Shown here in pieces: positions 1,351-22,716 of a stretch of DNA of 64,000 nt. The notes below the pieces were generated by a model. It had not been told where the DNA came from and did not search any database. It worked only from the letters and a program-made list of their open reading frames with translations. The position numbers and the translations under genes were made by a program. Numbering within the stretch: position 1 is the stretch's first letter; each line of letters begins with the position of its first letter. This stretch comes from Lepidodermella squamata. Taxonomy: Eukaryota; Animalia; Gastrotricha. Location of the stretch: assembly GCA_047495785.1 (NCBI GenBank), contig JBLDXI010000029.1:1488001-1552000 (forward strand), given 5' to 3'.

Positions 1351-3247
1351 TCAGGGCAAATTTTTCTTGTACCAAAACTTGAGTATCGTGCCAGCCAAAT
1401 CGCGCTCAGCATTGTTCTGAATTTGAACAGATCCAACCTATCATAATTATTAAATGATTAGGTACTATTTATTAATTTTTTCAACATTTCATTCAAATTC
1501 GAGATAAAACCGGGTGATTTCTAAAATCAGCCAGCAAATAATATGCAAGTTTCGAAATTTCGTTTATCTGTAATTCTTTAATTTCTCGAGATAATGTATT
1601 GGGTATCTATCAAAATTACCGAATCAAATGTAGTGAACGGCATAGATTCCGGCGAAAAGGCAGGGGTCGAAAGATTGGCGGTAAGCAACGACATGTTGCG
1701 CGTCAAATCGTCAGCCATCGGGCTAGCAAGGCATTGCCGATAGACCTTGATACTGTTCGCGTTCGCCCACCATTTGTCATGCGCGAAGCAAAAATCAATT
1801 GCGTCGTCAATTGTGACGAGAACCCTTTGAAATATAGAATATATCCTACACCTTTACAAAATTTGCGGTGAGCGGAACCAAATCTGCTTGTTGCTAGTAG
1901 GAGTTGCTTTTTAAATAATTCTACGAATTCGAGGCGAAGCATGAGTTCTGAATGGAACACACAGTCTTTTAGAGAATGATACGCTGAATTTCAGTCATTT
2001 TTTTTATAATTATAGTGGTCAATCTTGATACGGAAGCAATACTCAAAAGTGATTTCAGACCACCAGAAAATCCCAAAATGGTTCCGCTACAGCATAACAT
2101 TTGGCTTCACTTACGACAAATTTGGGTGCGCTGGACTGGTGACTGTTGTAAATACCATCGAGAAGAAGCAGTTGCAGAAAGCTGTCACACGCAGCGGGTC
2201 GTGGCCGACTGCCGCGTCAAAACACGCCATGTTCTTGTTGCCTTTACATTCGTCTGGGCCGTTTTGGCACTCATAAATGTATTTTTTGTTTGTTACGTTG
2301 TAATGAGACTAAAGTTGAAGGCAAAAAATATATATGCATAAGTAAGTATTTCTGCTATCAGAACTAAACATTTGCCCGTTGTTGCACAAATTTTCTAAAC
2401 TATACAGGGTGGCCACAAAATTCTGCAGAAGGCGAATTCGATGCGCATCGATTCAATGAGAAGTTTCAGGAAATTGAGGATTGGCAAACGAATGCTTTGT
2501 CATTCTTAAACTTCTTGAAACTCCTCATTAAATTGATGCGCATCGAATTCGCCTTCTGCAGAATTGTTGGCCATCACCCTGTACACCGCATTTGTTCCAA
2601 TAGTAGCCCAATCGTTACCCTACGGTTGAAGGTTAATGTCGGCTCGAAACCTTGAAAAATGAGCGATTAACCAGAAATTATTTTTCGAATTACTCTAAAT
2701 TTTAAGAATGAAATTTTAGTAGCCCGCGCTGCTATAGGAACAAATACGGTATTACATAGGACTCTTGTAGGGGAGAGTGCAGTTGGAACCATTTAAAGGA
2801 CAGAATTTGACGGGGTTCCAACAGTCAATATTTTTCGCTTGAAAATGTTAAAGGGTGAGCACTAAAATCGAACTTCAAGTCGACCTAACTTTTTTTTATA
2901 AATTAATGATTCAAATTTTTTAAAATTACAACAGTTTTTCCGTATGGCACGAAGTTGATCTGGTACAGTTGGCTCGGTAAGACGCTGTAGAAGACCAGCG
3001 GGCCGACTTCACCGAGAAAAAACTGAGCGTCATTCTGGCCAAGCGATTGAAAATAGACGGAGACCGCCACCGGGCTGTAGGCGGTTAAATTTGACGGCAG
3101 GCCAGCGATTGCCTGTGAGAAGTTGGCGAAACGAGCCGGGAAGCCTGGCATAGTGGGATTGCCTCTGCCCTTGCTTTGGCTATTTACTGCCAATAGCAAA
3201 TCAGCTGCGAGAAGAACGGCGGCGGCCATAAAAATTCGCGATGACAT
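1351..3247 (-). CDS. GILT-like protein copy 1, lacking active-site cysteines; exons 3247-2930, 2308-2115, 1824-1620, 1437-1351
   Basis: Signal peptide; VSVYFQSLGQND at the CxxC position; FVPYGK; signature variant CQNGPDECKGNKNMAC; PFTTFDS; last exon VGSVQIQNNAERDLAGTILKFWYKKNLP*. All junctions are GT-AG and in frame, but the model needs an extra intron 2114-1825. Confidence 0.75.
2405..2581. mobile_element. Tc1/mariner-type palindromic MITE in intron 1 of GILT copy 1
   Basis: TA|CAGGGTGGCCA...CACCCTG|TA, with almost the whole element an inverted repeat. Empty site in GILT copy 2 intron (AAACTATTCACCGCATTTG, ~6452-6470). Confidence 0.85.
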
Positions 3248-3839
3248 GATTATTCTTTTAATACTTGCAATATTGCTACATTTTAGAAAAAACAGCAAAA
3301 TTACCACTTGAGAAAAAAAGTTACTCATCATCGACTTCATAATATTTGGCAAGTACTATTCAGCAGCTTTTCGAGAGAAATTAAAAATGAAATAGAAAGT
3401 AAAATGTGTCGAAGCTCGAAGCTAGCCAGTGAGTCAAAAAACCTTCCGCAAAACGTTGGACGAGCCCCTCCAACCCATCAAAGAGTCATCCAAAGCTTGA
3501 GGATGGATGGCCAATAACGCTTAGAAGGTAGATTCTAGCAATCTGAAACAGGACCATGACAAGGCCGGGAAACTAGTTGATATTGAATCCCTGTATAGGC
3601 TTCGATAATATCCTAAAGGGATGGTACAAGGGGTACCTAAAGGGATGTAGCTGCTTGGCAACTGCGACTATTTTCCCGGCTAAAGGCAATCTTTGCCCAT
3701 GCGGGAAGATTTCTTGCCTGGTAATTTTCGTCAAATGGAAAAGCAACAAGTTACAACCCGGCCGATTAGGAATTAATAATGGAGCAATAAGGCCGAGTAA
3801 GAATGCGACTTTTCAAAAAATAAGTGACAATAAACTAGC

Positions 3840-4800
3840 GAACAACCTAAAGGCTTCATTTATTGCAAACAATATTCCAGTTTTTGTTTGGAGTTCAGAA
3901 TTGTATAAATCCTCAACAGGTTTATATAGGCAATGATTCCCGCTACAGCGGCGTCATCGCGTTAGGAATCGTTCTGCTCTGCCGATGCACTGTCGTCGGC
4001 TTCGGCCGGCTACCACTGACGTCATTGCCATCGGCGCGCACTGCTCAGGCAAGTCGCTGCATTTTCAGCCAGCTTCACAATGCCACCACCGCGCGCCACC
4101 CTGTCGAACGCCGTTATTCAACTTTTTGCTATTAGGTCATGTGAGGTCATCGTCGAGTGCGCGGTCTGAACGTCCTAATTGCGAGAAATTCAAATTGTTA
4201 ACAAGTTTTTTCGTTTGCGTTTTCATTTGGTTTAAAGCCAATTTCACTATAAATCTATTCTGCCTATTCAATTTCTTCAGTCTTAAAAAAATGTTAAAAA
4301 AATTTAAACATTTTTAAAAATAAACAATAGTAATGCTCGATTGTTCTATAATTTTCTTTCGGTTGCTTCATATGCTGCCGCACATCACATGTGAAATATC
4401 TTTTTGAACAAAATGAAAATGCAAAAGAAAAAAGGTGTAGAAAAAACTTACTAGCGACTCAACATTTTCGGGTGGCTATTTTCGAAGGGTGAACTAGGTC
4501 GCGATTATAGGAACGCTGGTCGTTGGTTGAGATTCAAAAAATCGCATACATAGGTGCTTTCAGACACCGGGTAACTTTACACTTCAGGACGTAAAAATGA
4601 GCGTTGTAGGTAGGAATGACCACAGCTGAAACGCTATATCGATTGGATTAAAAAAGATACCGGCGAAATTGTCTGAAACTAGGTCAATTACACCTACCTG
4701 CTACTGGTAGCAAATTCAAATTTCAAATCACGAGCCCAAATGTTAAATAGGCACCGCAAAAACTCCAACTTCTTGCGACATAAATGATTTTCATTTTTCT
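3840..4800 (-). pseudogene. Degenerate unidentified gene co-duplicated with the GILT unit (other copies ~8000-8995, 9900-10320, 13490-14420, 19240-20300)
   Basis: Blocks such as GATTCCCGCTACAGCGGCGTCATCG and TTTCAAATCACGAGC recur upstream of GILT copies 1-4. The minus strand shows a GTAAGT donor (~4450) and protein-like fragments broken by different stops and indels in each copy. Confidence 0.45.
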
Positions 4801-5735
4801 TGAATTTAATAAGAAAGTTCTATTTCGAATCCTATTCCAGAACCTATACCCCGACAGCCTGCCAGCTATTATTGGTCCCTGCATCAAGTCGCTAGCAACG
4901 AAATCGTTGATTTTGATACTTCTTACGTCAGCGATCTGGCTTATTCTTCAAGTTCTGGGAGATTCGGTTGGAAAACATTCGAAGTAAAATTATCGGGCGG
5001 TTTGATAAAACTTTCAGGAAGGTATGACACGCTAAAATCCAAGGAGGATTTGAAATAGGATATTTTATTTGGTAATTAGCCTAACATTAAAGTCAATTAA
5101 TACAGAGATATCACAAAATAAAATGAAAAATCAGTATCTTCACGGCAATTTTGTCGCCATACCAAAACTTCATATAACAAATAACAGTATACGGTCTTAT
5201 TAATTAAAACTCACAAGGCGTAACTTTTGCCACCACGGCCAATAAGGAAGATTGGGGGCTTTAAGCAATTTCATAAGGTCACTAGTATAATAAAAATAAT
5301 TAAGAGTGACTACTATGATATGTACGAGATTTTCGCTAGTCGTACATATATTCGAATGAAAACTTAGAATTTCAGCCAATTACTCAATTTTAATCCTCGC
5401 CCATCGGTTATGGTGGCTCCACCTTAACAAAATGTGATTTTAACAAGTTAAAATAAGGCTCAAAAATACCTAAAAGTGCATTTCCAACTCAGTTTGACAC
5501 TATCAATCGAGTTGATTAGACAAAACTTGAGCCTCTCTTCTTAGGAGGTATTGCTTCGGGCAATAATTGTGTTTGATTGCCTTATAAACTAGTTTTTTAA
5601 AAGTTTGCTTATTAAACTAGTTGGATTCCCAATCCAACTATATTGCTTATTAGACTACGACATATATGTACGAGCAGCCATTCCGAATAATCAATTCAAT
5701 ATCAGCCACAAAGTGAAAGAAAGAAATCAGCATCT

Positions 5736-7295
5736 TCAGGGTAAATTTTTCTTGTACCAAAACTTGAGTATCGTGCCAGCCAAATCACGCTCAGCATTAT
5801 TCTGAATGTTAACAGATCCAGCCTGAAATAATTGAAAGATAACGCATTATTAAATAATTTTTTCAACTTTTTTAAAGATCTACGTGAGGAATTTTTTTCA
5901 ATTTTTTCAAATTCGAGATAGAACCGGGTGATTTATAAAATCATCCAGGAAATAAGCTGCACAATGTTTCGAAAATTTTTCCAACAAATAAGATAATGTA
6001 TTAGGTATCTATCAAAATTACCGAATCAAATGTAGTCCACGGTATAGATTCAAGCGTAGAGATAGGGGTCGAAATATTGGCAGTAAGCAGCGACATCGTG
6101 CGCGTCAAATCGTCACCCATCTGGCCCGCAAGGCACTGCTGGTAGATCTTGGTACTGTTCGCGTTTTCCAACCATAAGTGCGATGCGAGGCAATACTTAA
6201 TATCGCGGTCCATTTCCAAGAAAGGAAATGTCGATAAGGCGTTGAAGACGCAGTTGAAAAACGCAACCGCGAGCGTCAAGTCGTGGCCGACTGCCGCGTC
6301 AAAACACGCCATGTGCTTGTTGCCATAACATTCGTCTGGACCGTGTTGGCATACATAGTCGTATATGTGAGTTGTTGCGTTGTAATGAGACTAAAGTCGA
6401 AGACAGAAATAATCAGAACTAAACGTTTGCCCGTTGCTGAACAACATTTCCAAACTATTCACCGCATTTGTTCCGATTCGCTAATAATATAATCACCCAG
6501 CCCTATAACAGTAGCCCATTGTGGAGGGGTCAAGTCGGCAAAAATTCAAAGAACAGAATTTGAAATCAGACAAATCACAATTCAACTCCAGCGTAGCCAA
6601 AGTTGCCTCCTGCTGAAAAAAATTTAGCACCAAAATGCGCTCTTACAAATGTTGAGAATTTCATAGTTGATTCAAAGCAATCCTTATTTCCTGGAATTTG
6701 AAAACACTACATAATAGTTATAAGGGTGTAATCTTTCATAGATCGTAGAATTCGAGTTGAAAATGCCAGATGACTAGTTTTGTATAAAATAAAGCCAAAA
6801 CGGGGTTGCAAGTTGTACAATGAAACGATGACTGGCAAAATGATCACTAGACCTTTCCTGTCCTAACTCAATCTGTCCTGCAATTATATGTTGCTTTTCC
6901 TAACATTGTCGAGCCGCCCTCTCTTCTTCGTAAATTGATTATTTTTAATTTTTGAAAATTACAACAGTATTTCCGTATGGCACGAAATTCAACCGGTACA
7001 GTTGACGCGGTATGAAGCTGTAGAAGACCAGCGGGTTGATTTGACCGGTGAAAAACAGAGCGTTAGGCTCGCCAATCGATTGAAAATAGACGGAGACCGC
7101 CACCGGACTGTAGCCGGTTAAATTTGTCGGCAGGCCGGCTATTGCATGCACGAAATTGGAGAAGCGAGCCGGGTAGCCTGGCATAGTGGTATTGCCTCTG
7201 CCCTTGCTTTGGCCATTTACTGCCAATAGCAAATCAGCTGCGAAAAGAACAGCGGCTGTCATGGAAATTCGCATAAACATTATTATTCTTTTCAT
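5736..7295 (-). CDS. GILT-like protein copy 2, lacking active-site cysteines; exons 7295-6963, 6390-6022, 5822-5736
   Basis: Signal peptide; VYFQSIGEPN at the active site; FVPYGN; CQHGPDECYGNKHMAC signature; IPWTTFDS; in-frame GT-AG junctions. Start Met is uncertain among several. Confidence 0.88.
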
Positions 7296-8915
7296 AGAGG
7301 CACTACTCTACATTACAGAAAAATCAGCAAAAATATCACATAAGAAATGTCATTTATGATTGGCGTAATATATTAATCGATCAAACGGCCTATAAGATGA
7401 TATGGAATTTCTTGACCGATACGTAATACCGATTCTTTTAATACAGGCAATTATGCTATACTTAAGGACAAACAGTAAAATTCACACATGAGAAACATTC
7501 CTAAAAGATAGACTTGTTTTGAATTCGAAAGGAAAATAAATAATGTCTAGGATAGTAATCGAATACTTGATCTATGGGTCTAAATTTGCAACACAAAATT
7601 CGATCATTCTGGCATAATTCAAAAGTCAAAAACCTCAACCCTCAACCTATAGACTATAGCCCCTCGAACCCATCAAAGAGTTCTCTCAGCATCTAACTAT
7701 TGCTTCAAAGTCTGGAACAATAGATGGCGCTTCAATTAACCGTGAAGCTTCAAGCAGCAATGCTTCCCGGGAATATATGTATTAAGATAAGTGCCAATAA
7801 GGCTAAGAGGGTAGATTCTACATCAGAACCATGATAACACTAAGAAACTAGTGGACATTCGAGAAATTGATTCCCTGTATAGGCTTGGATAACATCCTAA
7901 AGGGATTGAACAAGTTACAATAACCCGAATTGATAGTTTTGGGATCAATAAAGGAGCAATGAGGCCGAGTATATATGCAAAAATATGACTGGGAAACAAA
8001 CTAAAGACTTCATTTATTGCAAACAATATTCCAGGTTTTGTGTGGGGGTTCAGAGTTGTATAAATCATCAGCGGGTTTGTATGGGCAATGATTCTCGCTA
8101 CAGCGGCGTCATCGTGTTAGGAATCGTTCTGCTCTGCCGATGCACTGTCTTCGGCTTCGGCCGGCTACCACTGACGTCATTGCCATCGGCGCTTACAGCT
8201 CAGGCAAGCCACTGCATTTTCAGTCAGCTTCACAATGCCACTCTGTCGAACGCCGTCATTTAACATTTTGCTATAAGGTCATACTTGTCGCATAGTCGAG
8301 TGCGCATCAAAACGTCCTAATTGCAAAAAATTCAAACTGCTTACTACTTATTTATTTTGTATTATCATTTTCTTCAAGCCCAATTTTATATTGGTGATAA
8401 ATTTTTTCTGCCTACTCTTGTTGTTCATTTATTTTATTCTTTTCAAATGCAACTTCTGCTTGATTTTTTCATTTTTTCAGCTGCTTCATACCTAAAAGTA
8501 CTGCACGAAAGCAGTTGATAAAAATTGGGCGCTGGGCCAGCATTGCTAGAGAAATTTAAATTTGTTTTGAACAAATGAAACAAGAAAGATGTATAGAAAG
8601 GACTTGCTAGCCACTCAAGAGTCAACATTTATACGGGTTTTCTTTTCAATTGGTGAACTAGGTCGCGGTTTCAAATTAGCCTGATGATTGATTGATATTG
8701 ATTGAGATTTAAAAATCGCAGGTAATTTTGCACACAGGTTAAATGAGCGTTGGAGGAATGATAGGAGCCGAAACGCTCTATAGATTGGATTAAAATCAAA
8801 TATGCTGGTAAACTTGGCACGTGTCTGAAACTAGGTCAATGACTCCCTTCTGTTTGAAATTTGAAACCACGAGCCCAGCTGTTTTCTGGTCTAAAAAATT
8901 CCGACTTCTAGGCGC

Positions 8916-10552
8916 TTAAATTATCTAATCCAGGGGAACTGGAATAATGTTATAATTTCTGAAATAACGAGGACAGTCATGACTAGCATCCATTTGGTAA
9001 AAAAAGGTCCGTAATCCTCTTAAAAATGCTCAACTTCTCTTTAGCGAAGCGAGCTTTGGCCTTTAGCAGGCGCAATTGGTGACGATTCGCCATCAGGAAT
9101 GATCTGAAAAACCTCCAAACCAAGAAAAATATCAAATTTACCGTTATCTCTTTTTTAATCTCAATGCCGATTAGACGTGGCAACTGAAACGGTCTTACCC
9201 ATGGATGGCGCCAGATCAATTATCAGGGCTGGGTTTGTATATCCACTATATCTAACGTCGATGGTCGACTAAGCACCTTGTTCAATTAGCTGCCGTTGAA
9301 TAATCGCCAAATTCCAACTTGAGTCAATTCAAACCTGGGTGCGAGCGCAGCGAGCTTTAGCTGACGGTAAAGTTGAAGATTTTGTGTCAGGATTAGCCGG
9401 AAATTGCTTCAAAACTCCTCTTCCATTGGCCTCAGGCCTCATAACGGGATATCTCTAATTACCGAAGTTCCAAACCAAAATGATGGAAGATAACTATTTT
9501 TCTTAATTCCAGTGAAATCATACAATTCTACTGCCCGACCGAGCTGGGGTGTCGCGACACCCCAGCACCCCTGTACTTCGCACCCTGCATGTAGTACGAA
9601 CTTGCCAGCTATTTCTTTTTGCTGCTACCGATGAAATCGTTGACTTTGATTATTCATAGTTGTGAGTTTCTCAAATGACTCGACAACTCAGAGCAAAAGT
9701 TCTGTATTGATTTCGATACTTCATTCGTCAGCGATGTGGATTATTCTTCAACTTCTTACTACAACGACAAACCTTTTCGCCATGTTCGGTAGTTCGCGAA
9801 TCACGGATTCAACTTCGGCCTCTGCGGCTCCGCTTGGATCTTGGATACGTACCGATCTCGAATCGAACCCTTTTGCATAAATTGCAATGCCTCATTGAAA
9901 TTGTACTTTGAACGACTACTGCGAAACGCTAAAATCGATTGGGTTACAATTGAAGAAGCTGGTGAAATGGGCCAAGTGTCTGAAACCAGGTCAATGACAC
10001 TTATCTGTTGCAGGTAACCATTTCAAATTTTAAATCACGAGCACAGATGATCTCTAGCGGGCGTATGAATTCTGAATTCCCAGCATAAATGATTGCTGAT
10101 TGCAGGTGAATTATTGGAATTGTGTATGACTCTGGGTCAGGTATCCGATTGTGAGGTTCTAAACTGTCGTCCTGCTAGCTGAACACGATTTTATCGGAAA
10201 GCTGATAAGAATTTTGGAGTTTGGTCATCGGACGATATGAGAAATAATCTCCTTCTATAATTATGCGACCAAAATTAATAATTTCATTTTTCTTCAATTC
10301 AATTCAAGTTTAATTCTATTTCGCATAGACAAAGCATCAAACAAGGTATCAAACAAGTCATAACTGTATAGGGGTGGGGGTGATTTCCATTTTTCTCCTG
10401 CCTTTGTCCTCTTCAAATCCGGAAATGGTATAGACGCAAAAGTCGAGGAGAGGGTAAATAAAAGCATTATTATTAAATTATCTAATCCAGGGGAATTGGA
10501 ATAATGTTATAATTTCTGAAATAACGAGGACAGTCATGACTAGCATCCATTT
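8916..10552. repeat. ~78-bp near-perfect direct repeat (8916-8995 and 10473-10552) enclosing a mosaic ~1.5-kb insert
   Basis: TTAAATTATCTAATCCAGGGGAAYTGGAATAATG...GACTAGCATCCATTT occurs twice. The insert contains discoidin-pseudogene pieces (~9600-9900) and a block highly similar to ~19996-20297. Confidence 0.8.
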
Positions 10553-11180
10553 TCGGCAAGGCTAGCTATTTTGAAGTTCAAAACTATCTATAACGAAGCC
10601 CTGCTAGCTTAATTTCGGACTGCTTAATTCTATTCTATTAATTCAATTCTTAATCTAATTATTATTATTATTATTACTATTATTATTATAAAATCCCGAG
10701 AAATTAACCATCTATTTTCTCGCAAAACTCTCTTTTAGGTTCTAACAACAAACCTGAAAGAGCCAGCACTGATTCAACAAAATCTTTCCCACCGAAATGT
10801 CATGATTCAGCTGAACATGTTCCGCTCCTTTCTCGAAGGTATACGCGGTCTTACGCAGTCTTAAATTATATCTTTGATCTGGCCGTGCAAAATTCGGCGC
10901 CAAAACATTCGAGCCAAAACCTCCGGAAGGCATGACACGCCACAAAATGTCTACAATTCAATCTTGGAATAAGGCTAACTGTCATGTAACAGAAAGTAAA
11001 ACGTGAGAATGTCTATCAGCCGATGCCATGTACCCGAAAGCAGGTAACGGAATGTTCAAAGAACCGAATGCAAACGTCATATTGTCAAATCTCCGATTGT
11101 CAAACACCCGAAAATTTTATAACATATTTTATTTGATCAATATCGTAACATTATAATAATCAAACACTAAATATTGTTAA

Positions 11181-11220
11181 TGTCTGAAGATGACGTCAGA
11201 TGACGTCAAAACGTCACAAT
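11181..11220 (+). ncRNA. Minimal hammerhead-ribozyme-like motif (Penelope-like element type), probably inactivated
   Basis: TGT-CTGAAGA-T-GACGTC-AGAT-GACGTC-AAAACGTC-ACA: CUGANGA core, perfect stem II, AAAA where GAAA is expected, GUC site, 3-bp stem I, AATAAA just downstream. Confidence 0.45.
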
Positions 11221-11482
11221 CTCAAATAAAAAAGGAAAATGGTCGCAAATTGTTTACATTAAAAATTTCAAAAAGAAACATCTAACTAAATATTACAGAG
11301 AAGTACAAATAAATTACAAAATCAGTATCTTTGTGGTAAATTTGTCGCATAACAATACTTCATGTAACAGTAGTAGGTTAAGCAGTAGGTTAAGGTCACT
11401 GGACACTGGTATAATATAGCTAATTAATTAAATACCAGCAGTAAAGACCAGCCATAAAATGAAATAGGAAAAATTAGCATCT

Positions 11483-13078
11483 TCATGGCGAATTCTTCGC
11501 GTACCAAAACTTCAGTATCGTGGCAGCCAAATCGCGCTCAGCGTGCCCCTGAATGATGGCAGATCCAACCTAAAATAATTGCACGAATAGGTATAATTAA
11601 TTCTTTTAATAATATTTCGTGAGCTTTACGCGAAGAATTCTTAAAATTTTTGGTAATTTAAAATCAGCCAGCAAATGTTATGCAAAAGAAATTATTAAGA
11701 AATTTTTCGGAAGTGAATTTTTTCCTTCAATATATAGCATTCGTTTCAAAAATATAGTGTTGGTAGATGTGCTCATGCAATATTTTTTGATACAGCACTC
11801 GTAACTCGTAAATCGTTTGTATCTGAACTCGCCGTACTCGATTTACTCATCTTCACTCGTCTTCGACTCGTTCCGATTCGTAAATCTCGGCCGGCTCCGT
11901 TCAGATATAGACTCTTTACTAGTGCTATACCAGACAAATATAGCATTCGCTCAAAAAATATAGTGTTAGTACCCATGCTCATGCAATATTTTACGATATA
12001 GCACTCGTAATTCATTCATATCTGGATTCTCCGCACTCGATTTGGTCATGCCCGCAATCTCGTGCTACGAATCTCAGATATAAATGAAACACTCGTACTA
12101 TATCATACAAATATAAGCTATTGATGTATCAAAATTACCGAATCAAATGTAGTCCACGGAATAGACTCTGCCGGGCGCGTAAGATACGCTGTAAGCGAGG
12201 ACATCGTGTGCATCAACTGGTCGCCGGTCCGGTTCGTACGGCACTCCTGATAGACATTGTTCTGGTGCTCATTTAACCCGCTTCTCTGATGTGCGCTGCA
12301 CAACTGTTCACATGTTGCGATAGAACTAACCGATTGTAAGCTCGTGAAGACGCAGTTGAAAAAAGAAACCACCCGCGTAACGTTGTGGCCGACTGCAGCG
12401 TCAAAACACGCCATGAACCTGTTGCCATAACATTCGTCTGGACCGTTTTGGCATTCATACCCGAATTGATTAGTTGCTGAGATGAAATGAGACTAAAGTT
12501 GAAGAAATAATTAAACGTTTTTCTTTTAACAGCATTTTCTTTCATCACAGCGTAATATATGCCCGTTGCTGAACAGAATCATAATAAATTCCCATTTTCA
12601 GAATAAGGCCTGGATTTTAAGAACATTACGTAATAGTTGAACGCTTTACTAATTTTACGGTTAGTGGCATTTTTGAATTTTGGTTCATCTGTTAAAATAA
12701 AAAATGTTAAATTGTAACAGAATTTTAGATTGCTGTTTCTGAATTGTTTCTGAATTGATAATTTTCGAGAATTACATAAGTATTTCCGTATGGCACGAAA
12801 TTGATCCGGTACAGTCGATGCGGTATGACGCCGTCTTCGATCAGCGGGCCGATTTGGCCGAGGAAAAACCGAGCGTCCCTCGGGCCAAGCGATTGAAAGT
12901 AGACGGAGACCGCCACCGGGTTGTAGCCGGTTAAATTCGTCGGCAGACCAGCTTTTGCCTGTTTGAAGTTGGAGAAACGAGCCGGGTAGCCTGGCAGCGT
13001 GGCATCGCCTCCGCCCTTGCTTTGGCCATGTACTACTAGCAATTCAGCGACAAAAAGAACGGCGGCTAACAGGAACAT
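11483..13078 (-). CDS. GILT-like protein copy 3, lacking active-site cysteines; exons 13078-12776, 12492-12139, 11569-11483
   Basis: Signal peptide MFLLAAVLFVAELLVVHG; VYFQSLGPRD; FVPYGN; CQNGPDECYGNRFMAC; IPWTTFDS; last exon ...ILKFWYAKNSP*. Confidence 0.88.
11732..12070. repeat. ~208-bp tandem-unit dispersed repeat in intron 2 of GILT copy 3; further copy at ~15852-15962
   Basis: ATATAGCATTCG...GCACTCGTAA occurs at 11733 and 11938. GAACTCGCCGTACTCGATTTA...CAGATATAGACTCTTTACT is shared with 15852-15950. Confidence 0.75.
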
Positions 13079-14765
13079 TCTTTTAAAATAAGCAATATTT
13101 CTACACTTCAGGAAATACAGCAAAATTAAGGCATGAGAAAAAGTCTTAAGAGCTGTTCTGAATTACAAAAGAAAATAAATAATGGCTGAGATATTATTCG
13201 GATATTTGATCAATGAGCCTTGTTTTGCAACACTAAATTTGGTTAGCATATAGGCACGATTTTTCCGATTTATTGATATCTGACCTTTTTGCTTGAATGA
13301 TGAATGATCCTAATGATCCTTGGCAACTACAACTATTCCCTGGCTGCAGGCAAACTTTGCCTATTATCGCGAGACCGATCCTTGTCGGATTACCAGATTC
13401 GTCTGGTAATTCAGTATGGAAAGTTACAACCAGGCCGAAATAAAATCAATGGAAAAATAAAAATAAAAAAGACTCAAGAACGAATTAAATACGTCCTTTA
13501 TTGCAAATAAAATTCCTGGTTTGGTCGGGAGTTCAAAATTATAAATCCTCAACAAATTTATATAGGCAATGATTCCCGCTACATAACTTCGCGGTAGCGG
13601 CTTCGTGTTAGGAATCGTTCTGCCCTGCCGATTCATTGTCTTCGGCTTCGGCCGGCTACCATTGACGTCATGGCCATCGGCGCTCACAGCTTAGGCAAGT
13701 CGCTAACTAACACTGCGTTTTCAGCCAGCTTCACAATGCCACCACCGCGCCACCCTGTCGAACGCCGTTATTCAACTTTTTGCTTTTATGCCATAATATG
13801 ATGACTTGTCGCATCGTTGAGTGCGCACCAGATAGCAACAAATTCAAATTGCCTACATAGAAAAAACCTTGCTAGCGACTCAACATTTACGGGTGGTTTT
13901 TATCGATTGGTGAATTAGGTCGCGATTGTAATTAGTAATCTGGGGTTGGTTGGGATTGAAAAATCGTATAACTATGGGTGATTTCGCAGGCAGGGAAAAT
14001 TTAGATAGTTCAGGACGCCGAAATAACCGAAGCCGCAGCGCTAAATCAATTGAATGATAATCATAGATGCTGGTGAAATTGGCATGTCTGAAATTGAGTC
14101 AATGACGCCTATACCAGTTACAGATTACAATTTCAAATGTCAAATCACGAACTCAACCGACTTCTTGCCGTAAATGATTGATTTCAGGTAAAGTATTGAA
14201 ACAATATGATTTGTCTTAAATGAGGACAACGCTGATACCTACCATTATGGGCCAGGTAAGCGATTTTAAGTTTATCAATACCTGGCAAATGAGGTCCTGC
14301 TAGCTTAATTTCGGACTGCTATATGAACACGATTTTATCGGAAAATCTGGAGGGGATTCATAGTTTAGTCATCGGACGATTTGTGAAATAGCCACCCTCT
14401 GTCATTAGGCTTTTATTTCATTTGATTTTCATTGAAATAAAAAAAGCTTATTTGTATTTTGAATCCTATTCCTAAACCTACACCGACATGTAATACGAAC
14501 CTGCCAGCTGTTTTTCAGCGAATGTCTCTGCGTTAATCGGTCCGGTCTCGATCAATCGGCTCACACCGATTATTCTGACATATCATACACAAACTATAAA
14601 TATTTGAGTTGGGAAACAGGATTTAATCGGTTTGCCTCGTTGAATATTGTGGGCGTCCTTTTCACCTTCATTTCAGCAGCGCAGCATGTTCTACGTGGTA
14701 GGAGACGTTGCTAGGTGAAACTACCCACAGGCACGAACACATTTTATTAGTTACCTCGAGCCAAT

Positions 14766-15850
14766 ATCAAAACGACGCTGGGGCGAATTTTAGCTCTAAT
14801 CTTGTTTGCTGTGATATGGCCCCGAGCAATATGTGGAGGCTATCACTACAATATCTACCCCGGAAAGGCAGTCGGCCCAGTTACAGCCGGCTACAACCTG
14901 TCGATTCACCTTGTTGGAAATCTAAGCTCGGTTGAACTAGCCTTAAACTGTATGGCTTCGTGCAATTCCAACGATCTTTGCAAATCTGGTCAATTCACTG
15001 CGAGTAATCTAACTTGCCTTCTGTGGAGCTTCGATTTATCAGGCTCGCAGATCGCACAACTTTTCACAAGTGCAGTTGCAACATCATGTTCTGTCGCATC
15101 AAATGGTCTGATGTGGCCAATGCTCGGCGAGATCTTGTACGCAAACTCGAATTCGGGATGCAATTTTAAATTCGGCTTGGACAGCCCCTTGTTTGCTGCA
15201 ACAAGTCGCTAGCGACGAAATGGTTGATTTATATACTTCATAAGTCGGCGATCTAGCTTATTCTTCAAGTTCTTACTACAACGACGAACTCATTCGACAT
15301 GTTCGGCTGTTCGCAAATCACGGATTCTACTTTGGCTTTGCTGCTGCGGCTCCACTTGGCTCGTGGATTCGTGTCGATCCCCAACGATTTGTTTGGATGA
15401 CTGAATTCCAATACTTTTGCATTAATTGCCAGCCGAAACTGAAAGTAGAGTACAGTTTTGATGGGCTGAATTTTTATGCCATCGACACCGGCCATGGAGA
15501 ACCAGTGTTCACCGAGACAACTTGAAGCGAAAACACAACCGCGATTTTCACCCCCTTCAGGCCTATTCTAACGAAACACGTCAAAGTTTCAAACACTTTT
15601 GAAAATAAAACTGTAAACTATTTGAGCAAGGCTAAAATTGCTGTGAAGGGGAGCCCCGCTCATTGCTTCGAACCGCTCGGCATGGAAACCTACGAAATTG
15701 AAGATTCCTAACTTCCGACCGAACGAGTCACGGCAAAGCCGTATTATTCTAGGCTGAATTGGGGATTGGCTGCGTATGCTAACACCGTGCCTTTGACGAT
15801 CGACTTGAAGAAGCAGGCCCTGCCTGTGTTACGCATTGTCTCCGGAAATT
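14766..15850 (+). pseudogene. Secreted PAN/apple + discoidin (F5/8 type C) domain pseudogene
   Basis: Signal-peptide-like KTTLGRILALILFAVIWPRAICG follows ATC (presumed lost ATG). PAN-like CMASCNSNDLCKSGQF...CLL. After a frameshift near 15200: SSSSYY..HVRL..SWIRVD..LKVEYSFDGLNF..PILTKHVKV, then CFEPLGMETYEIEDS*L (second discoidin start). Stops at 15241, 15523, 15709. Truncated by a repeat. Confidence 0.72.
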
Positions 15851-16744
15851 GGAACTCGCCGTACTCGATTTATACTCATCTCCACTCGTCTTCGACTCGT
15901 TCCGATCGATAAATCGGCCGGCTCGTTCAGATATAGACTCTTTACTCGTGCTATAACAGACAACTATAATATACTTTATTAGTGGATTCGCGCGACAGAA
16001 ATGTTTCATCCCGGGGTCATAGCAACAATAAATTGACCAATCAGCGCGCGGGTCAAAGCTTAACTTACTACTTGAAACACAATGTCGTTCTCGTTTAAAT
16101 TTGAATTTAGAAATTTAGAATTTAACCCGCATCTGATCATTTGCGACACATGGTATTCCGCTCTTATCTCATGACTCATGAGTGTAGGCAGTCTCTCTTA
16201 AACTATGCATAATTAAGTCAATGATCTCACCCTACTATTCGGTGAGAGCCAAAACTTCAGGATGGTATGACGCGCCACACTAAGATTTCGCAGTAAGATG
16301 TTTTATTTGGCCAAAAGCATAATAATCAAATATAAATTATTACAAAGAAATTAAAATAAAATAAAAATCAGCAAATTCGCGGTAAACTTGTTGCATACCA
16401 ACACTCCATATATAACAATTTGCAGTAGGTTAAGGTTACAGGTATAATATGGATAATTAATTCAATGCCAGTTAATACCCAGCCATAAAATATATAAAAA
16501 ATTGGCATTTTTTTAAATACATGTTTTGTTAAGTATCATGTTTTGTTTGGGTTCAACCCCGCGATTATAGAAAACCAATAATAGTCAAAAATAGTAATTG
16601 TTTTTTTCAAAGTTCATCATCATGAAATATTGCTGATTAAACATAAGTTCAGAAAAATCAAGGGCGTCAAACACGAGACAGTAATTTCTCTTAGCAGATA
16701 CGTCTTTTCTCTGTGGGAAAGTCAGAGCCCCGAAATTTGCATCT

Positions 16745-18281
16745 TCAAGGCAAATTTTTCTTGTACCAAAACTTCAGTATTGTGCCAGCCAAATCGTCGG
16801 AACCACGTTGAATAGCAACAGATCCAACCTAAAATAATTGCATGTTTAGATATAATTAATTAATTCTTTCAGTGAATATCATTTCGTTAGATTAACGCGA
16901 ATAATTGTCAAATTGTTTGATAATTTCTAAAATCAGCCAGCAAAAAATATGCACAAATGTTAGTTGGGATATTTTAATTATAAGATTATGTATTAGGTAT
17001 CTATCAATATTACCGAATCAAATGTAACCCATGGCACGAATTGAATCGGGTTCGAAAGATTGGCGGTAAGCAAGGCCATCGTGTGCATCAAATTGTCGCC
17101 GGTCGGGCTCCTAAGGCACTGCTGATAGACTTCGTTCTCGTTCACGGTTAATCCGCTTTCTTGCGGCGCGCCGCAAATAGTCGTTTCAATTGAGCGAATA
17201 TCGATATAGCTAAATGTTATTAAGGTCGAGAAGGCACATTTCAGAAAAGAGACTGCACGCGTAACGTTGTAGCCGACTGCCGAGTCAAAACACGCCATGA
17301 ACCTGTTGCCGTAACATTCGTCTGCACCGTGTTCGCACTCATAAAGGTATTCTCCAGTTGCTGAGTTGAACGATTCCTAAAGTTAACATTTCATTTTCAT
17401 TTTCAACAGCTTGTTTTTTATCCCAATTCAAAATTAAATTAAATTAAATTGAAATCAAAAGTTGAAATACTTCAAACACAGCCAATTAAAAAGGGTTGTT
17501 TTCGAATATAAATTTTACATCGTGATTGATTACCATGTGTTCTCAAAGTACAATGGCCAGGCCTTGCATTGAAAATCAAGAATAATGCACAGCCCTATAC
17601 TCTGACGCTATTGTGGACCTCCCGGCTGAGTCATTTTTTACCGAAGCGAAGCCTCGATAAAAAATGTTGAAATGCCGGGGAACGTTGAAAAAATTGAAAT
17701 TAATATTAAGGGGGGACGGGGGAGGGGGGGGGGGGGGTTATTCAAAGGTCGAAAATGCTTGCGTAATAGTTAGCATGTGTTAGTTTTATTTATACTATAG
17801 GCACCGTTATACTTTGGATCCAGTTATACTTTGGATATAAGTACACAATATTTTCATCTAGTGGCAATTTTTGAATTTTGGTTCTGCTGTTGGCGCTGCT
17901 GAAAATTAAAACATTGTTTGATTATCAATAGACTGATTTTAAATTTTTGAAATTACAACTTACAACGGCATTTCCGTATGGCACAAAATTGATCCGATAA
18001 AGTTGAGGTGGTAAGACGCGGTTTTCGATCAGTGTGACGATTACACCGACGAAGTACTGCCAGCAAGCCGAGCTAAGCGATTCAAAATAGATGGAAACCG
18101 CGACCGGCCTGTAAGCGGTTAAATTTTTCGGCAGGCCAGCTTTTGCCTGTGCGAAATTTGCGAAACGAGCCGGGTAGCCTGGCAGCGTGGCATCGCCTGC
18201 GCCCTTGGTTTGGCCATGTACTGCCAATAGCAAATATGCGGCGAAAGGAACAGCTGCTAACAGGAACATTTGCGAAAACAT
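16745..18281 (-). CDS. GILT-like protein copy 4 with SxxC active-site variant; exons 18281-17964, 17376-17014, 16828-16745
   Basis: IYFESLSSAC; FVPYGNA; CEHGADECYGNRFMAC; VPWVTFDS; last exon ...ILKFWYKKNLP*; in-frame GT-AG junctions. Confidence 0.88.
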
Positions 18282-18738
18282 GATTATTCTTTTAATAAAG
18301 GCGATTTGCTACACTTCAGAAAAAACAACAGAAAACAGAATTAACAATTCATAAAAGATGCTCTTTTCTAAGTTTTCGACAGAAACTAACAGCGCTGCCT
18401 CGAGCCTTAAAACTGTCGCGCGGAAAGCTGAATTCTGATCTGATCTGTTGTCAGTGTCAGCGGTGAAGGGGAATGTTAGGAGCCCTCAAGGGAATAATTT
18501 AGAATATGAAAATCCTATGTTGAAAACATATGATGTAGAAATCAGGGTGCTAAAATCACCAGGAATAAGCTGGGCCGATAGTCTTATGAACAATAGCCGA
18601 TAGTCTTATGAAATGAACAGATGTGCTGAAAAATTGGTTTTCATCCAGAGATAAAACATTCTGCCGTGAAAGGGTTAAGAATATGTGAAATGGAGATGAA
18701 CCATCTAGCTGCTAGAAGTGAGCGCCTCCGGCATCTCT

Positions 18739-18984
18739 ATCATTTCCAAGCCACCTGCCGGCTATACAAGCAACCATAGACATTTCGGGGTTGTTTACAG
18801 TGATGACAAATCGATCACCGATGATACCAGTGCATGATACGGTGGTGTATAACACAGCGCCCCGATGCAGCAGCGTGAATTTTTACCATCGCCGGTCATC
18901 ATTGGTGATCAATTTAACACCACTGTAAACAACTTCGAAATGTCTATGGTTGCTTGTATAACCGGCAGGTGGCTTGAAAATGAT
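18739..18984. mobile_element. Fold-back MITE-like palindrome with ~90-bp arms upstream of GILT copy 4
   Basis: ATCATTTCCAAGCCACCTGCCGGCTATACAAGCAACCATAGACATTTCG... is mirrored by ...CGAAATGTCTATGGTTGCTTGTATAACCGGCAGGTGGCTTGAAAATGAT. Confidence 0.8.
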
Positions 18985-20642
18985 TATTCGAGACGCCAGA
19001 GCAGCTCCATTCCATTAATTTGACTTACGTAACCACTTACAATTGATAATTCAAGTTTCGAGAAAAGTTCAAGCCTGCCATCTTGGGTCTTGGTAGTTGT
19101 TATGCTCGCTAGCTACAGGCCCAGGCAAACTAAGGGGGCCCGGAATTAAGCACAAAATTTCCTCAAGTAACAAGGCCGAGTACCGAGTACTTCAGTATGC
19201 GAATCACATTAAAAAATCAAAACAAAAGATACTAAATACTTCATCGCAAATAAAATTCTAGGTTTTGCTGGGAGTTCAGAATGTTATTAATCCTCAACAG
19301 GTTTATGTTGACATTGATTCCCGATTATAAAGACATTTCGTCTTTCGTCGTGTTAGCGGCTTCGTGTTCGGCCCGGCCTGTGTTATGCACTGTCTTCAGC
19401 TTCGGCTGGCTACCACTCTGACGTCACAGCCATCGGCTAATAGAGCTCATTTGGCAATGATTCCCGCTACAGCGGCGTCATCGTGTTAGAAATCGTTCTG
19501 CCCTGCCGATGAACTGCCATCAGCTTCGGCCGGCTACCACTGGCGTCACAGCTACCGGCGCTCACAGCTTAGGCAAGTCGCTAGCCAACGCTGCGTTTTT
19601 ACCCAGCTTCACAATGCTGCCACCCTGTCGAACGCCGTAATTTAACTTTTTGCTATAAGTTCATACGATGACTTGTCGCATAGTCGAGTGCGCACCAAAA
19701 CGTCCTAATTGCAAAAAAAAACAATTTTTTTTTACATGAAAAAACATGAGTTGATTGTTTTGAAAATCTCTAGCGCCCATTAATGAATGATTTCTTCTGA
19801 ATGGAAATATGATTTGTTTCGAGATCAGTACTGACTAAGCTAAATTAGCCAAGAAGTGAGCGACCCTCTTGAGATCCTAAAGAGTCAAAAAGGTGCTGAA
19901 TACGTTTTTAACACAGAAAAACGGAAGTAATTTTTTATAGTTGGGTCATCGGACGATTTGAGAAATAATGATCACCCAGTATAATTATGCGAGAAATTTT
20001 AAATCACGAGCCCAGATGATCTCTAGCGGGCGTATGAATCTGAATTCCCAGCATAAATGATTGCTGATTGCAGGTGAATTATTGCAATAGTGTACGACTT
20101 TCGGTTAGGTATGCGATTTTGAGGTTCTAAACTAGCAAATGTCGTCCTGCTAGCTGAACACGATTATATCGGGAAGCTGATAATAATTTTGCTGTTTGGT
20201 CATCGGACGATTGAGAAAAAATTGCCTTTTTTAATTATGCGACCCAATTTATTAATTTCATTTTTCTTCAATTCAAATAAAGTTTAATTCTATTTCGGAT
20301 AGTGATGCGAATCTCCTTGCTATTTTGCAGGGGGAAACTAGGCGAGTTCATGTATGTTCGCGTTTATCGGTCCTGGCTCTGGGCTCGATCCATCGGCTCC
20401 CACCGATTATTCTGCCATCATACTGCCATCAGACAGCTAAACTTATACCAAGGGAGTTGAGAAAACAAGGATTGAATCAATTTGCTTCGTTGAATATTGT
20501 AGGAAATTTCTGACGTGCAACTTTTTCCATCAAACAGTCTTTTCATCAAACAGCGAACAGTCTTTTCTTTTATTCATAAATGAAGCCAATTTTCAGATCA
20601 CAATAAAAATAGAATAAAAATAACCCTCGGTGACTTCGGATT

Positions 20643-22716
20643 TCACGGCAGATTTTTCGCGTACCAATACTTTAAAATTGTCCCAGCCATTTCGAAGTAA
20701 GCGACCCTGATTATCGCATCAGATCCAACCTGAAAAATTAGCAAAATTTAAAAGTACGCAATTCAAATTGAAAATCAAAAGATTTTCATAATTCTCTAAT
20801 AATTTTGTGATCATTAATGACCGATTAAAATTTCGAAATTTTGAAATTTAAAAAATTAACTATTTAAATTGTTAAGTGCAAAATTACAACTCCATGACAT
20901 AGCAATTATATAGTGTAAAAAACCAGAGTTGCACTTGTATAAACAGTCTGTAAAAACACACGTGTTTAAACACATGATTAAACAGTATAAAGTTTTGGTG
21001 CCATGTGAAAATGTATAAATATAGGTGCAGAAACGTAGCAGGTTTTGACCACTATAACAAGGAAACTAAGGTGAAAGTTAAGGGAATTTCGTCATTTTGT
21101 AAACTTATCACATATCGAGACTTATACTATATAATACTTGTATTTAGATAGTGTATTAGATGACGTTGGGTAGTGGGATATACGCAGGATGAACAAGGGT
21201 TCCCAACGTGCTTGAGCTTCATCAGCGTCTTTTTCTGAAACTAAGGTTACTGCAATCGTAAAACAGATATCGCCATTGAATTCCTGGTCAAAAGTTACCC
21301 TAGAGAAGTCATAGAAAACGACTAGCAAAAAGACTTTAGGGCAATTTTTTATTACTGCAATAAAGTAATCTGGACCGGAAGTGATCCTATCTCGGAAGCG
21401 GCGATGGGTATGAAAATTCTGCAAAAGCCATTCGATCCGGCGGGGCCCTTTTCATTTTCTTTGTTAACTTTCTTTGTTGGCAAGAGCTCAGCTGTCCATC
21501 GTTAATTCTCGACGAACCGTAAAATTGTTTCGCAATCTCGCCTTTAGATTCCGTTTGCCTCGCGGGTTTGCGCCATAGGTACCTAACTGTGGCAGCTAAG
21601 CAACATGCTGCTAATCGTTTTCTTGACACGTATTATGGTAACTTTTGACGAGGAATTCAATGGTGACATCTGTTTTACGATAGCAGTGAGTCCTGTGGTA
21701 AGAAAACAAAAATATGGTTCTTGGCTAGGCGTCGAAATCAGAGCCTTAGTCTTATTATTTATATGCAGTGTTTAAACATATATTTTTACATGTTTAAACA
21801 GTTTATACGTATAAACATGTATAAATTGACCGCGATCTGTGAATAGTGCAACCCTGTAAAAAACATACCGAATCAAAGGTCACCCAAGGAATGAAAGTTT
21901 GCGGAGGTTGAAGAGCTTCGGTTCTCGCGCCCATTCTCGCGTGCAATTCCTTGCCCGTCCCGGTTGTATGACACTGAACCCATGAGTTGTAAGTAGTCAC
22001 TGATCTCGCCCTCAGAGGCGCAGCGCACCTGTTAGCGAGTTGACCAATGCGAATGCCCGAAAACACGTCCCTGAACATGCAGTTGAAAAAGGCGACCGAT
22101 TGCGTGACGTTGAAGCCGACTGCCATGTCAAAACACGCCTGGTATATGTTGCCTTCACATTCTTCGGGCCCGTGTTGGCAGGTGAATGAGTAATTTCGTG
22201 AAGTAGCATTGTATCGGGTCTAAATAATTGAAAAATATTAGGTAAATTAAATTCCTGACATTTGATTTTTTGAATTTTTAAGAAATTTTGAAATTTGTTT
22301 AGAATTTCAAAAAATAGGAATATCAGGTTTATACTTTTCGATCCGAAACAAGATTTGAATTGGGAATTCTTTTTTCTATTTCAAGTTTTCAAATTGAAAT
22401 TTTTAAACTTTTTCAAATTCACCTCAGCATTTCCGTAGGGTACGAATTCGAGCCGATACAATTCAGGCGGGATTATGCGATTGTTGACCAATGGGCCGAT
22501 TTGGTTGAGGAAAAATGTCATGCTATCAGGGCAGACAGACTCGAAGTAGATGCCGACTGTCACCGGGCTGTAGCCGGTTAGATTTCGCGGCAGACCAGCT
22601 TTTGCCTGCGAGAAATTTGAGAATCGAGGCGGGTAGCCGGGCGGCCTACCTGCTTCCAAGCTGTGGGCTTGTAATAGCAGAACAGCTGCAGAAATGACAC
22701 TGGCAAGCAAGGACAT
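20643..22716 (-). CDS. IFI30: Gamma-interferon-inducible lysosomal thiol reductase (GILT)-like protein, copy 5, CxxS active site; exons 22716-22423, 22219-21869, 20729-20643
   Basis: Signal peptide; IYFESVCPDS; LEFVPYGNA; canonical signature CQHGPEECEGNIYQAC; IPWVTFDS. Confidence 0.92.
20924..21856. mobile_element. Non-autonomous hAT-like DNA transposon in intron 2 of GILT copy 5
   Basis: TIRs CAGAGTTGCACT / AGTGCAACCCTG. Perfect 8-bp TSD TAAAAAAC at 20916-20923 and 21857-21864. Subterminal TGTTTAAACA repeats. Internal ~50-bp inverted repeat at ~21250-21300 and ~21637-21688. Confidence 0.85.

Follow-up and report, generated by a model that had tools for sequence, protein, structure and literature searches.

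What becomes of a thioredoxin-fold enzyme gene once its nucleophilic cysteine has been lost is the question raised by a tandem gene array in the gastrotrich Lepidodermella squamata (genome 121 Mb, 151 contigs). The stretch of DNA analyzed, referred to here as the window, comprises 64,000 nucleotides of contig JBLDXI010000029.1 (C29:1,488,001-1,552,000) and contains five genes for GILT-like proteins (PF03227), all on the minus strand between window positions 1351 and 22716 with a spacing of ~5 kb. Copy 5 has the monothiol active site Cys-Pro-Asp-Ser (CPDS), and in copies 1-4 the nucleophilic N-terminal cysteine is gone. The reading favored here, which we consider probable, is a tandem expansion of a GILT subfamily in which copies 2-4 have been maintained as fast-diversifying, probably non-catalytic binding proteins built on the GILT fold. 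The exons of the five copies are as follows.

22423..22716, minus strand: copy 5 exon 1, signal-like N terminus and CPDS region, from open reading frame and gene model; Pfam GILT 29.2 bits, profile positions 2-43; donor GTGAAT
21869..22219, minus strand: copy 5 exon 2, signature, helical insert and cis-proline motif IPW; Pfam GILT 42.7 bits (hmmscan); acceptor TTTAG, donor GTATGT
20643..20729, minus strand: copy 5 exon 3, encoding the conserved C-terminal helix, with ILKYWYAKNLP directly before the stop codon; matches the P0006 C terminus
17964..18281, minus strand: copy 4 exon 1, active-site tetrad SSAC
17014..17376, minus strand: copy 4 exon 2, Pfam GILT 29.8 bits (six-frame search)
16745..16828, minus strand: copy 4 exon 3, gene model
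12776..13078, minus strand: copy 3 exon 1, tetrad GPRD, with Gln replacing the preceding Glu
12139..12492, minus strand: copy 3 exon 2, Pfam GILT 27.7 bits; one additional Cys in the hypervariable segment (ATCEQLC)
11483..11569, minus strand: copy 3 exon 3, gene model
6963..7295, minus strand: copy 2 exon 1, tetrad GEPN
6022..6390, minus strand: copy 2 exon 2, Pfam GILT 35 bits (hmmscan)
5736..5822, minus strand: copy 2 exon 3, gene model
2930..3247, minus strand: copy 1 exon 1, tetrad GQND
2115..2308, minus strand: copy 1 exon 2a, Pfam GILT 27.6 bits; last 31 nucleotides (2115-2145) derived from a transposon
1620..1824, minus strand: copy 1 exon 2b, cis-proline motif MPF, not IPW
1351..1437, minus strand: copy 1 exon 3, gene model

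Copies 2-5 consist of three exons each, with all eight introns in phase 0 and bounded by canonical GT-AG dinucleotides (acceptors (T)TTAG or TTCAG), and the predicted proteins have lengths of 262, 247, 254 and 243 amino acids, respectively. Both exon junctions are confirmed residue for residue, with identical spacing, by the homolog P0006, an intronless sequence of 251 amino acids from an environmental assembly. The open spliced frames given for all five copies in a preliminary description of this DNA are thus present in copies 2-5, and copy 1 is open only with a fourth exon. Exons were searched individually, and joined coding sequences built from the window coordinates were used for the alignment, tree and codon analyses only. 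Six-frame motif searches place FVPYG, the signature C..G..EC.(G)N....C and (I/V)PW(V/T)TF once in each gene unit, with no occurrence outside the five units in the whole 64-kb window.

In a six-frame genome search against the Pfam GILT profile (gathering cut-off 22.4 bits), exon 2 of copies 1-5 scores 27.6, 35.2, 27.7, 29.8 and 44.6 bits, respectively, all above the cut-off. Exon 1 matches the profile only in copy 5, which fits erosion of the active-site half of the protein in copies 1-4. Every copy contains the signature C-Q-H-G-x2-E-C-x2-N-x4-C (variants CQNG and CEHG), in agreement with the preliminary description, which had given it as CxxGxxECxGNxxxAC. The signal peptides claimed there are borne out in that every copy has a hydrophobic, signal-like N terminus followed by a small-x-small cleavage-like site, as judged by eye. 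No variation is seen among copies 1-5 in the cis-proline or in the six cysteines of the scaffold, and the conserved glycosylation site is retained in copies 1-4.

The active-site segments had been reported as ESVCPDS (copy 5), ESLSSAC (copy 4), QSLGPRD (copy 3), QSIGEPN (copy 2) and QSLGQND (copy 1), and all five strings are found on the minus strand as quoted. The tetrad codons are TGC CCT GAT AGC in copy 5, AGC TCG GCT TGC in copy 4, GGC CCG AGG GAC in copy 3, GGC GAG CCT AAC in copy 2 and GGC CAG AAT GAC in copy 1. The buried Glu beside the active site is also replaced, by Gln, in copies 1-3, and CxxC occurs in none of the five array copies. The ancestral active site of the subfamily is reconstructed as CxxS (C-P-D-S), not CxxC, because copy 5, its paralog gene D and the homologs P0006 and P0012 are all CPDS. 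With TGC at the first tetrad position in copy 5, AGC in copy 4 and GGC in copies 1-3, parsimony does not discriminate between one loss and two losses of the cysteine, and the Cys that copy 4 has at position 4 is derived, its TGC codon having replaced AGC. The SxxC of copy 4 would thus belong to a side branch on which the position-4 Ser was replaced by Cys, and it is not demonstrated as an intermediate. The stepwise loss proposed in the preliminary description, from CxxS through SxxC to none, is therefore reduced to a possible reading.

How unusual the derived state is can be gauged from 93 aligned GILT representatives, all full-length and single-domain. The cis-proline is present in all 93, the Glu that precedes the tetrad by two residues (E-S-x-C) in 88 and the N-terminal Cys in 90; among these 90, the fourth position is occupied by Ser in 46 sequences, by Cys in 40 and by Thr in 4. 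Loss of the N-terminal Cys is therefore rare (3/93), yet it has occurred at least twice in this genome, in the array and in gene C of a second cluster described below. Two of the three exceptions, the unrelated P0058 (SPEC) and P0113 (WPYC), are xxxC, the same state as copy 4, so that loss of the first Cys combined with a position-4 Cys recurs. The cysteine count is seven in copies 1, 3 and 4 (the six of the scaffold plus one) and six, the scaffold alone, in copy 2. Both active-site cysteines are used in mammalian GILT. A mouse GILT mutant with CxxS has reduced but partly kept activity, and recombinant mosGILT, a CxxS protein, has no detectable reductase activity at pH 4.5 or 7.4 (PMC6060088). 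Because the ancestral state is CxxS, and by analogy with mosGILT, copy 5 itself may be a poor reductase or none.

The maximum likelihood tree recovers the subfamily as a clade with a support of 100/100 and the topology (P0012,(P0006,((D,C),(c5,(c4,(c3,(c2,c1))))))), in which c1 to c5 are the array copies and C and D are genes of the second cluster. The ladder formed by the array copies mirrors their chromosomal order. Copies 1-4 are united with a support of 100/100 and are joined by copy 5 with 80/94, and the stem branch of copies 1-4, at 0.68, is long compared with the branch of copy 5 (0.15).

This stem coincides with a change in selection. Pairwise estimates by the Nei-Gojobori method (NG86) give a synonymous divergence (dS) of 0.25-0.45 among copies 1-4 and >1 to copy 5, with a ratio of nonsynonymous to synonymous divergence (dN/dS, ω) of 0.57-0.89 overall. 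A branch model assigns ω = 0.14 to the CPDS copies (copy 5 and D), a value that is approximate, the outgroup branches being near saturation, 0.83 to the stem and 0.86 to the branches within copies 1-4. Equal ω is rejected at p = 8e-15, and equality of the stem with the outgroup at p = 2.5e-4. There is thus a sharp shift in selection regime between the CPDS copies and the stem together with copies 1-4.

Within copies 1-4 the constraint is distributed unevenly. Conservation is strongest in exon 3 (pairwise dN/dS 0.2-0.5) and divergence peaks in the segment after F-x-x-C (1.2-1.8 among copies 1-4), which upholds the preliminary contrast of a conserved exon 3 with a hypervariable post-signature segment, except that dS is raised in this segment as well. 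Secondary-structure mapping places the hypervariable segment in the helical insert, at approximately residues 153-173 of P0006. Codon models of dN/dS across the paralogs, the check suggested in the preliminary description, reject near-neutrality of copies 1-4 over the whole coding sequence: the site model M1a places 39% of sites at ω = 0.10 and fits far better than a single ω, and M2a adds 11% of sites at ω = 8.5. The likelihood ratio test (LRT) of M2a against M1a gives 42.0 for all codons (p = 8e-10), 20.3 without the hypervariable segment (p = 4e-5) and 12.2 for the gap-free mature part of exon 1 (p = 0.002), compared with a maximum of 11.3 in 21 data sets simulated under M1a, so that the diversification of the copies that had been proposed is supported. 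A screen for gene conversion by comparison of the alternative four-taxon topologies in each region found one topology best in every region. The sites with a posterior >0.8 comprise one site in the N-terminal extension, the third residue of the former tetrad, two hairpin residues preceding the signature, eight residues of the helical insert, one ahead of the cis-proline strand and two where exon 3 begins. The M2a sites lie in alignment columns 48, 76, 118, 121, 163, 183-193, 231 and 249-252. The proposed diversification around the former active site would thus draw on a single selected tetrad position together with positions in the helical insert and in loops.

Maintenance of the derived copies was assessed by neutral simulation at the nucleotide level on the dS tree (4000 runs). 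The frame of each copy is kept open in <1% of runs, copies 2, 3 and 4 are jointly open in 0 of the 4000, and with the terminal branches alone the values are 5, 3 and 0.8%. All six indels in the coding sequence are multiples of three, compared with 4 of 28 (14%) in the introns. The 16 splice dinucleotides of the two introns shared by copies 1-4 are all intact; from the dS tree length of ~0.74, about six hits would be expected at eight essential positions. Judged by their open frames, intact splice sites and site-heterogeneous constraint, copies 2-4 are maintained and not decaying. The maintained pseudo-enzymes of the preliminary description can accordingly be kept for copies 2-4, in which the canonical catalytic residues are lost, and four would be too high a count, because copy 1 has a transposon in exon 2.

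Compared with copy 2, copy 1 has ~320 additional bases that split its exon 2 in two, and most of these belong to a miniature inverted-repeat transposable element (MITE).

1835..2145, minus strand: MITE in copy 1 exon 2, 311 nucleotides, with terminal inverted repeats and 9-bp target duplications in an alignment to 8 copies

The family to which the element belongs is represented in the genome by at least 208 candidate copies, of which the 40 scored have 73-84% identity, and the alignment with eight copies (L015-L022) defines terminal inverted repeats of ~35 nucleotides and the 9-bp target duplications. In copy 1 the target duplication reads TATTTACAA (2146-2154) and TATTTCAAA (1826-1834). An open frame requires the removal of 290 nucleotides (1825-2114), which would form a new intron with the donor GTAAGT inside the left terminal repeat of the MITE, where the family consensus is the donor-like GGTGAG, and the acceptor TTTCAAAG in the right-hand copy of the target duplication. 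Of the MITE, 31 nucleotides at its beginning would remain exonic, with a net gain of 30 nucleotides or 10 residues (VTSPAHPNLS...), and the spliced model is open with 267 amino acids. Copy 1 appears either to have been rescued by the splicing of most of the MITE or to be a young pseudogene, and the putative intron is a possible case of introner-like intron gain. The suggestion that copy 1 is clearly more decayed than copy 2 was rejected: it has one unique departure at an invariant position (Trp to Phe in the PW motif), a number equal to that of copies 2 and 4.

On the favored reading, the array would have arisen by lineage-specific tandem expansion within a GILT subfamily of secreted, glycosylated proteins whose fold is of the thioredoxin/DsbA type with a helical insert and whose ancestral active site was the monothiol CPDS, which copy 5 and the paralog D, ~400 kb away, would have kept under strong purifying selection. 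A duplicate of the copy 5 type would have lost the nucleophilic Cys, and three serial duplications in chromosomal order would have given rise to copies 4, 3, 2 and 1, with copies 1-3 further losing the buried Glu next to the site. The derived copies are predicted to be incapable of canonical thiol-disulfide exchange, and they would have kept the six scaffold cysteines, the cis-proline loop, the signal-like N terminus, the glycosylation site and the C-terminal helix while ~5-11% of their codons changed faster than neutral with frames and splice sites intact. The catalytic loss, taken together with the kept scaffold, frames and splice sites and the fast codons, argues for a non-catalytic binding protein as the most likely function, secreted or lysosomal, on a dead GILT scaffold and diversifying among the paralogs in a manner comparable with mosGILT. 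The MITE would have struck exon 2 of copy 1 later, with most of the element spliced as a new intron and 10 residues gained, or with a young pseudogene as the result. That copies 1-4 form a new fast-diversifying secreted recognition family, an immune-type or a prey- or microbe-binding repertoire, built by serial tandem duplication and with a new intron and 10 residues made by the MITE in copy 1, is a tentative proposal that we hold to be doubtful.

Several points weigh against the favored reading. The gene-wide ω within copies 1-4 is 0.88 (0.91 in IQ-TREE) and not different from 1 (p = 0.31), so most positions are simply relaxed. The site models use four sequences, and gene conversion, synonymous-rate variation and alignment uncertainty can inflate M2a. 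Because dS is raised in the hypervariable segment, selection need not account for all of its divergence. The profile of exon 2 (copies 2-5) retrieves 682 GILT relatives from 1.84 billion representatives with a best E = 3.7e-22, and no close ortholog of the Cys-less copies is among them, none lying below E = 1e-30; the 149-amino acid open reading frame of copy 1 exon 1 has no match in a word-based protein search that covered only proteins of 82-260 amino acids. To these are added the transposon insertion in copy 1 and the seventh cysteine of copies 1, 3 and 4, which could be redox-active. The mean ω, the raised dS, the lack of orthologs in both searches, and in copy 1 the MITE together with the Trp to Phe change in an otherwise invariant motif are all points in favor of the view that copies 1-4 are functionless duplicates decaying since the Cys was lost, with the positive selection an artifact of four sequences, gene conversion or misalignment. 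Such decay is nonetheless hard to reconcile with frames that stay open where neutral simulation closes them, with coding indels that are in frame in every case as those of the introns are not, and with undamaged splice dinucleotides, an invariant set of scaffold cysteines plus cis-proline and the large class of constrained sites under M1a, and we regard it as very improbable.

A relocated rather than a lost active site, with the derived copies still redox-active through other cysteines, has its candidates in the SxxC Cys of copy 4 and the extra Cys in the helical insert of copies 3 and 1, and it draws on the facts that the copy 4 Cys is a derived gain and that xxxC recurs in P0058 and P0113. 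In the thioredoxin fold, the Cys at position 4 is the buried resolving cysteine and not the nucleophile, copy 2 has scaffold cysteines only, copies 1-3 are without the conserved buried Glu and no extra cysteine is conserved from one copy to another, so that this alternative seems to us quite unlikely. The third view reverses the timing and treats the whole subfamily, including copy 5 and D, as already non-catalytic in the manner of mosGILT, with the Cys loss a late and inconsequential event in long-standing binders. CPDS as the ancestral state of the clade, the subfamily's own N-terminal extension and its lack of the usual GILT C-terminal cysteines are consistent with this, as is the inactivity of mosGILT with its CxxS (PMC6060088). 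The shift of ω from 0.14 to ~0.85 falls on the same branch as the disappearance of the Cys, which argues that something functional changed there, and the partial activity of the mouse CxxS mutant (PMC6060088) also speaks against this view, which we consider unlikely. Of the readings weighed, maintained and probably non-catalytic binding proteins in copies 2-4 is the one we prefer.

The remaining GILT-like genes of the genome provide the setting of the array. A second GILT cluster of four genes lies on the plus strand of the same contig ~400 kb upstream (C29:1,086,400-1,096,100; loci L002, L005, L013, L007 and L003), and a further gene lies on another contig.

Second cluster, plus strand: gene A, saposin-A-like N terminus, canonical CPDC
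Second cluster, plus strand: gene B, CPDT, additional intron after CQ
Second cluster, plus strand: gene C, SPAS, long branch
Second cluster, plus strand: gene D, CPDS, closest relative of copy 5
C24:1,654,548-1,654,922, minus strand: further GILT gene (locus L001), CPDS, predicted N-terminal transmembrane segment, usual C-terminal cysteines

CxxC is thus found in one of the ten GILT-like genes of the genome, and the N-terminal Cys is missing in five of the ten. From its different Ser codon (TCG) and its position in a different clade, gene C is judged to have lost the Cys independently of the array. The second cluster lies downstream of a DEAD-box helicase gene, and its order is conserved in ENA metagenome contigs (L023-L026). 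P0006 (L023:10001-10756) is an intronless ortholog of the CPDS subfamily on these contigs; it adjoins an ortholog of gene A (L023:8006-8936) and likewise lies downstream of the helicase. The expanded GILT array was not seen on the ENA metagenome contigs that carry P0006. Of the 12 best-scoring matches of the exon 2 profile, which were examined in full, P0006 and P0012 alone show the traits of the subfamily.

Directly upstream of the array, at window positions 23505-25826 on the minus strand, is a single-exon gene for a class C receptor of 773 amino acids (ANF_receptor and 7tm_3 domains). Poly-A and TATA motifs were uninformative. Copies 1-4 share, ~30 nucleotides before the ATG (at 18282-18320, for instance), a conserved pyrimidine-rich sequence with TGTAG at its end (TTTTCTGAAGTGTAG or a variant of it); its resemblance to a splice acceptor could reflect an intron in the 5' untranslated region or a trans-splice site.

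Paralogs of enzymes that have lost their activity are common, and in this respect the array is not surprising in kind. Its value is as a compact natural series for the passage of a thioredoxin-fold enzyme to a non-enzyme, with a constrained monothiol copy beside four derived copies in which the nucleophile would have been lost first and the buried Glu then, and the disulfide scaffold kept.

The fold was predicted for the homolog P0006 only, with a pLDDT of 93 and a pTM of 0.86 from an alignment of 85 rows. The best solved match of this model is mouse GILT (6NWX; TM 0.77, E = 2.7e-12), followed by DsbA proteins, which are bacterial periplasmic oxidases with CPHC. The P0006 model shares with the DsbA-type proteins the thioredoxin fold with an inserted helical domain, but no sequence relationship is detectable beyond the fold (phmmer E = 0.68 to a DsbA). 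With GILT/IFI30 (PF03227, 6NWX) the array shares the Pfam match, the CQHGxxECxGNxxxxC signature, the cis-proline VPW loop, the signal-like N terminus and N-glycosylation sites. It differs in that CxxC is absent, copies 1-4 are without the nucleophilic Cys and copies 1-3 without the conserved Glu. In addition, the typical C-terminal cysteines are replaced in the subfamily by a conserved helix (ILKFWYKKNLP) and an N-terminal segment (PGYPxRFxNFxxAxxGLPxNLTxY) is added.

The closest functional model for a non-catalytic GILT is mosGILT of Anopheles gambiae (AGAP004551), likewise a GILT-like protein with a degenerate active site, which is secreted and binds Plasmodium sporozoites (PMC6060088). In contrast with the array, mosGILT is a single gene and keeps the N-terminal Cys of its CxxS, whereas here the Cys is absent from four mutually diversifying tandem paralogs. 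A non-catalytic GILT-like binder is thus already established, and what is new is the diversifying tandem clade without the nucleophilic active-site Cys. If the derived proteins are indeed binders, the precedent of mosGILT would be extended to a multigene, diversifying family.

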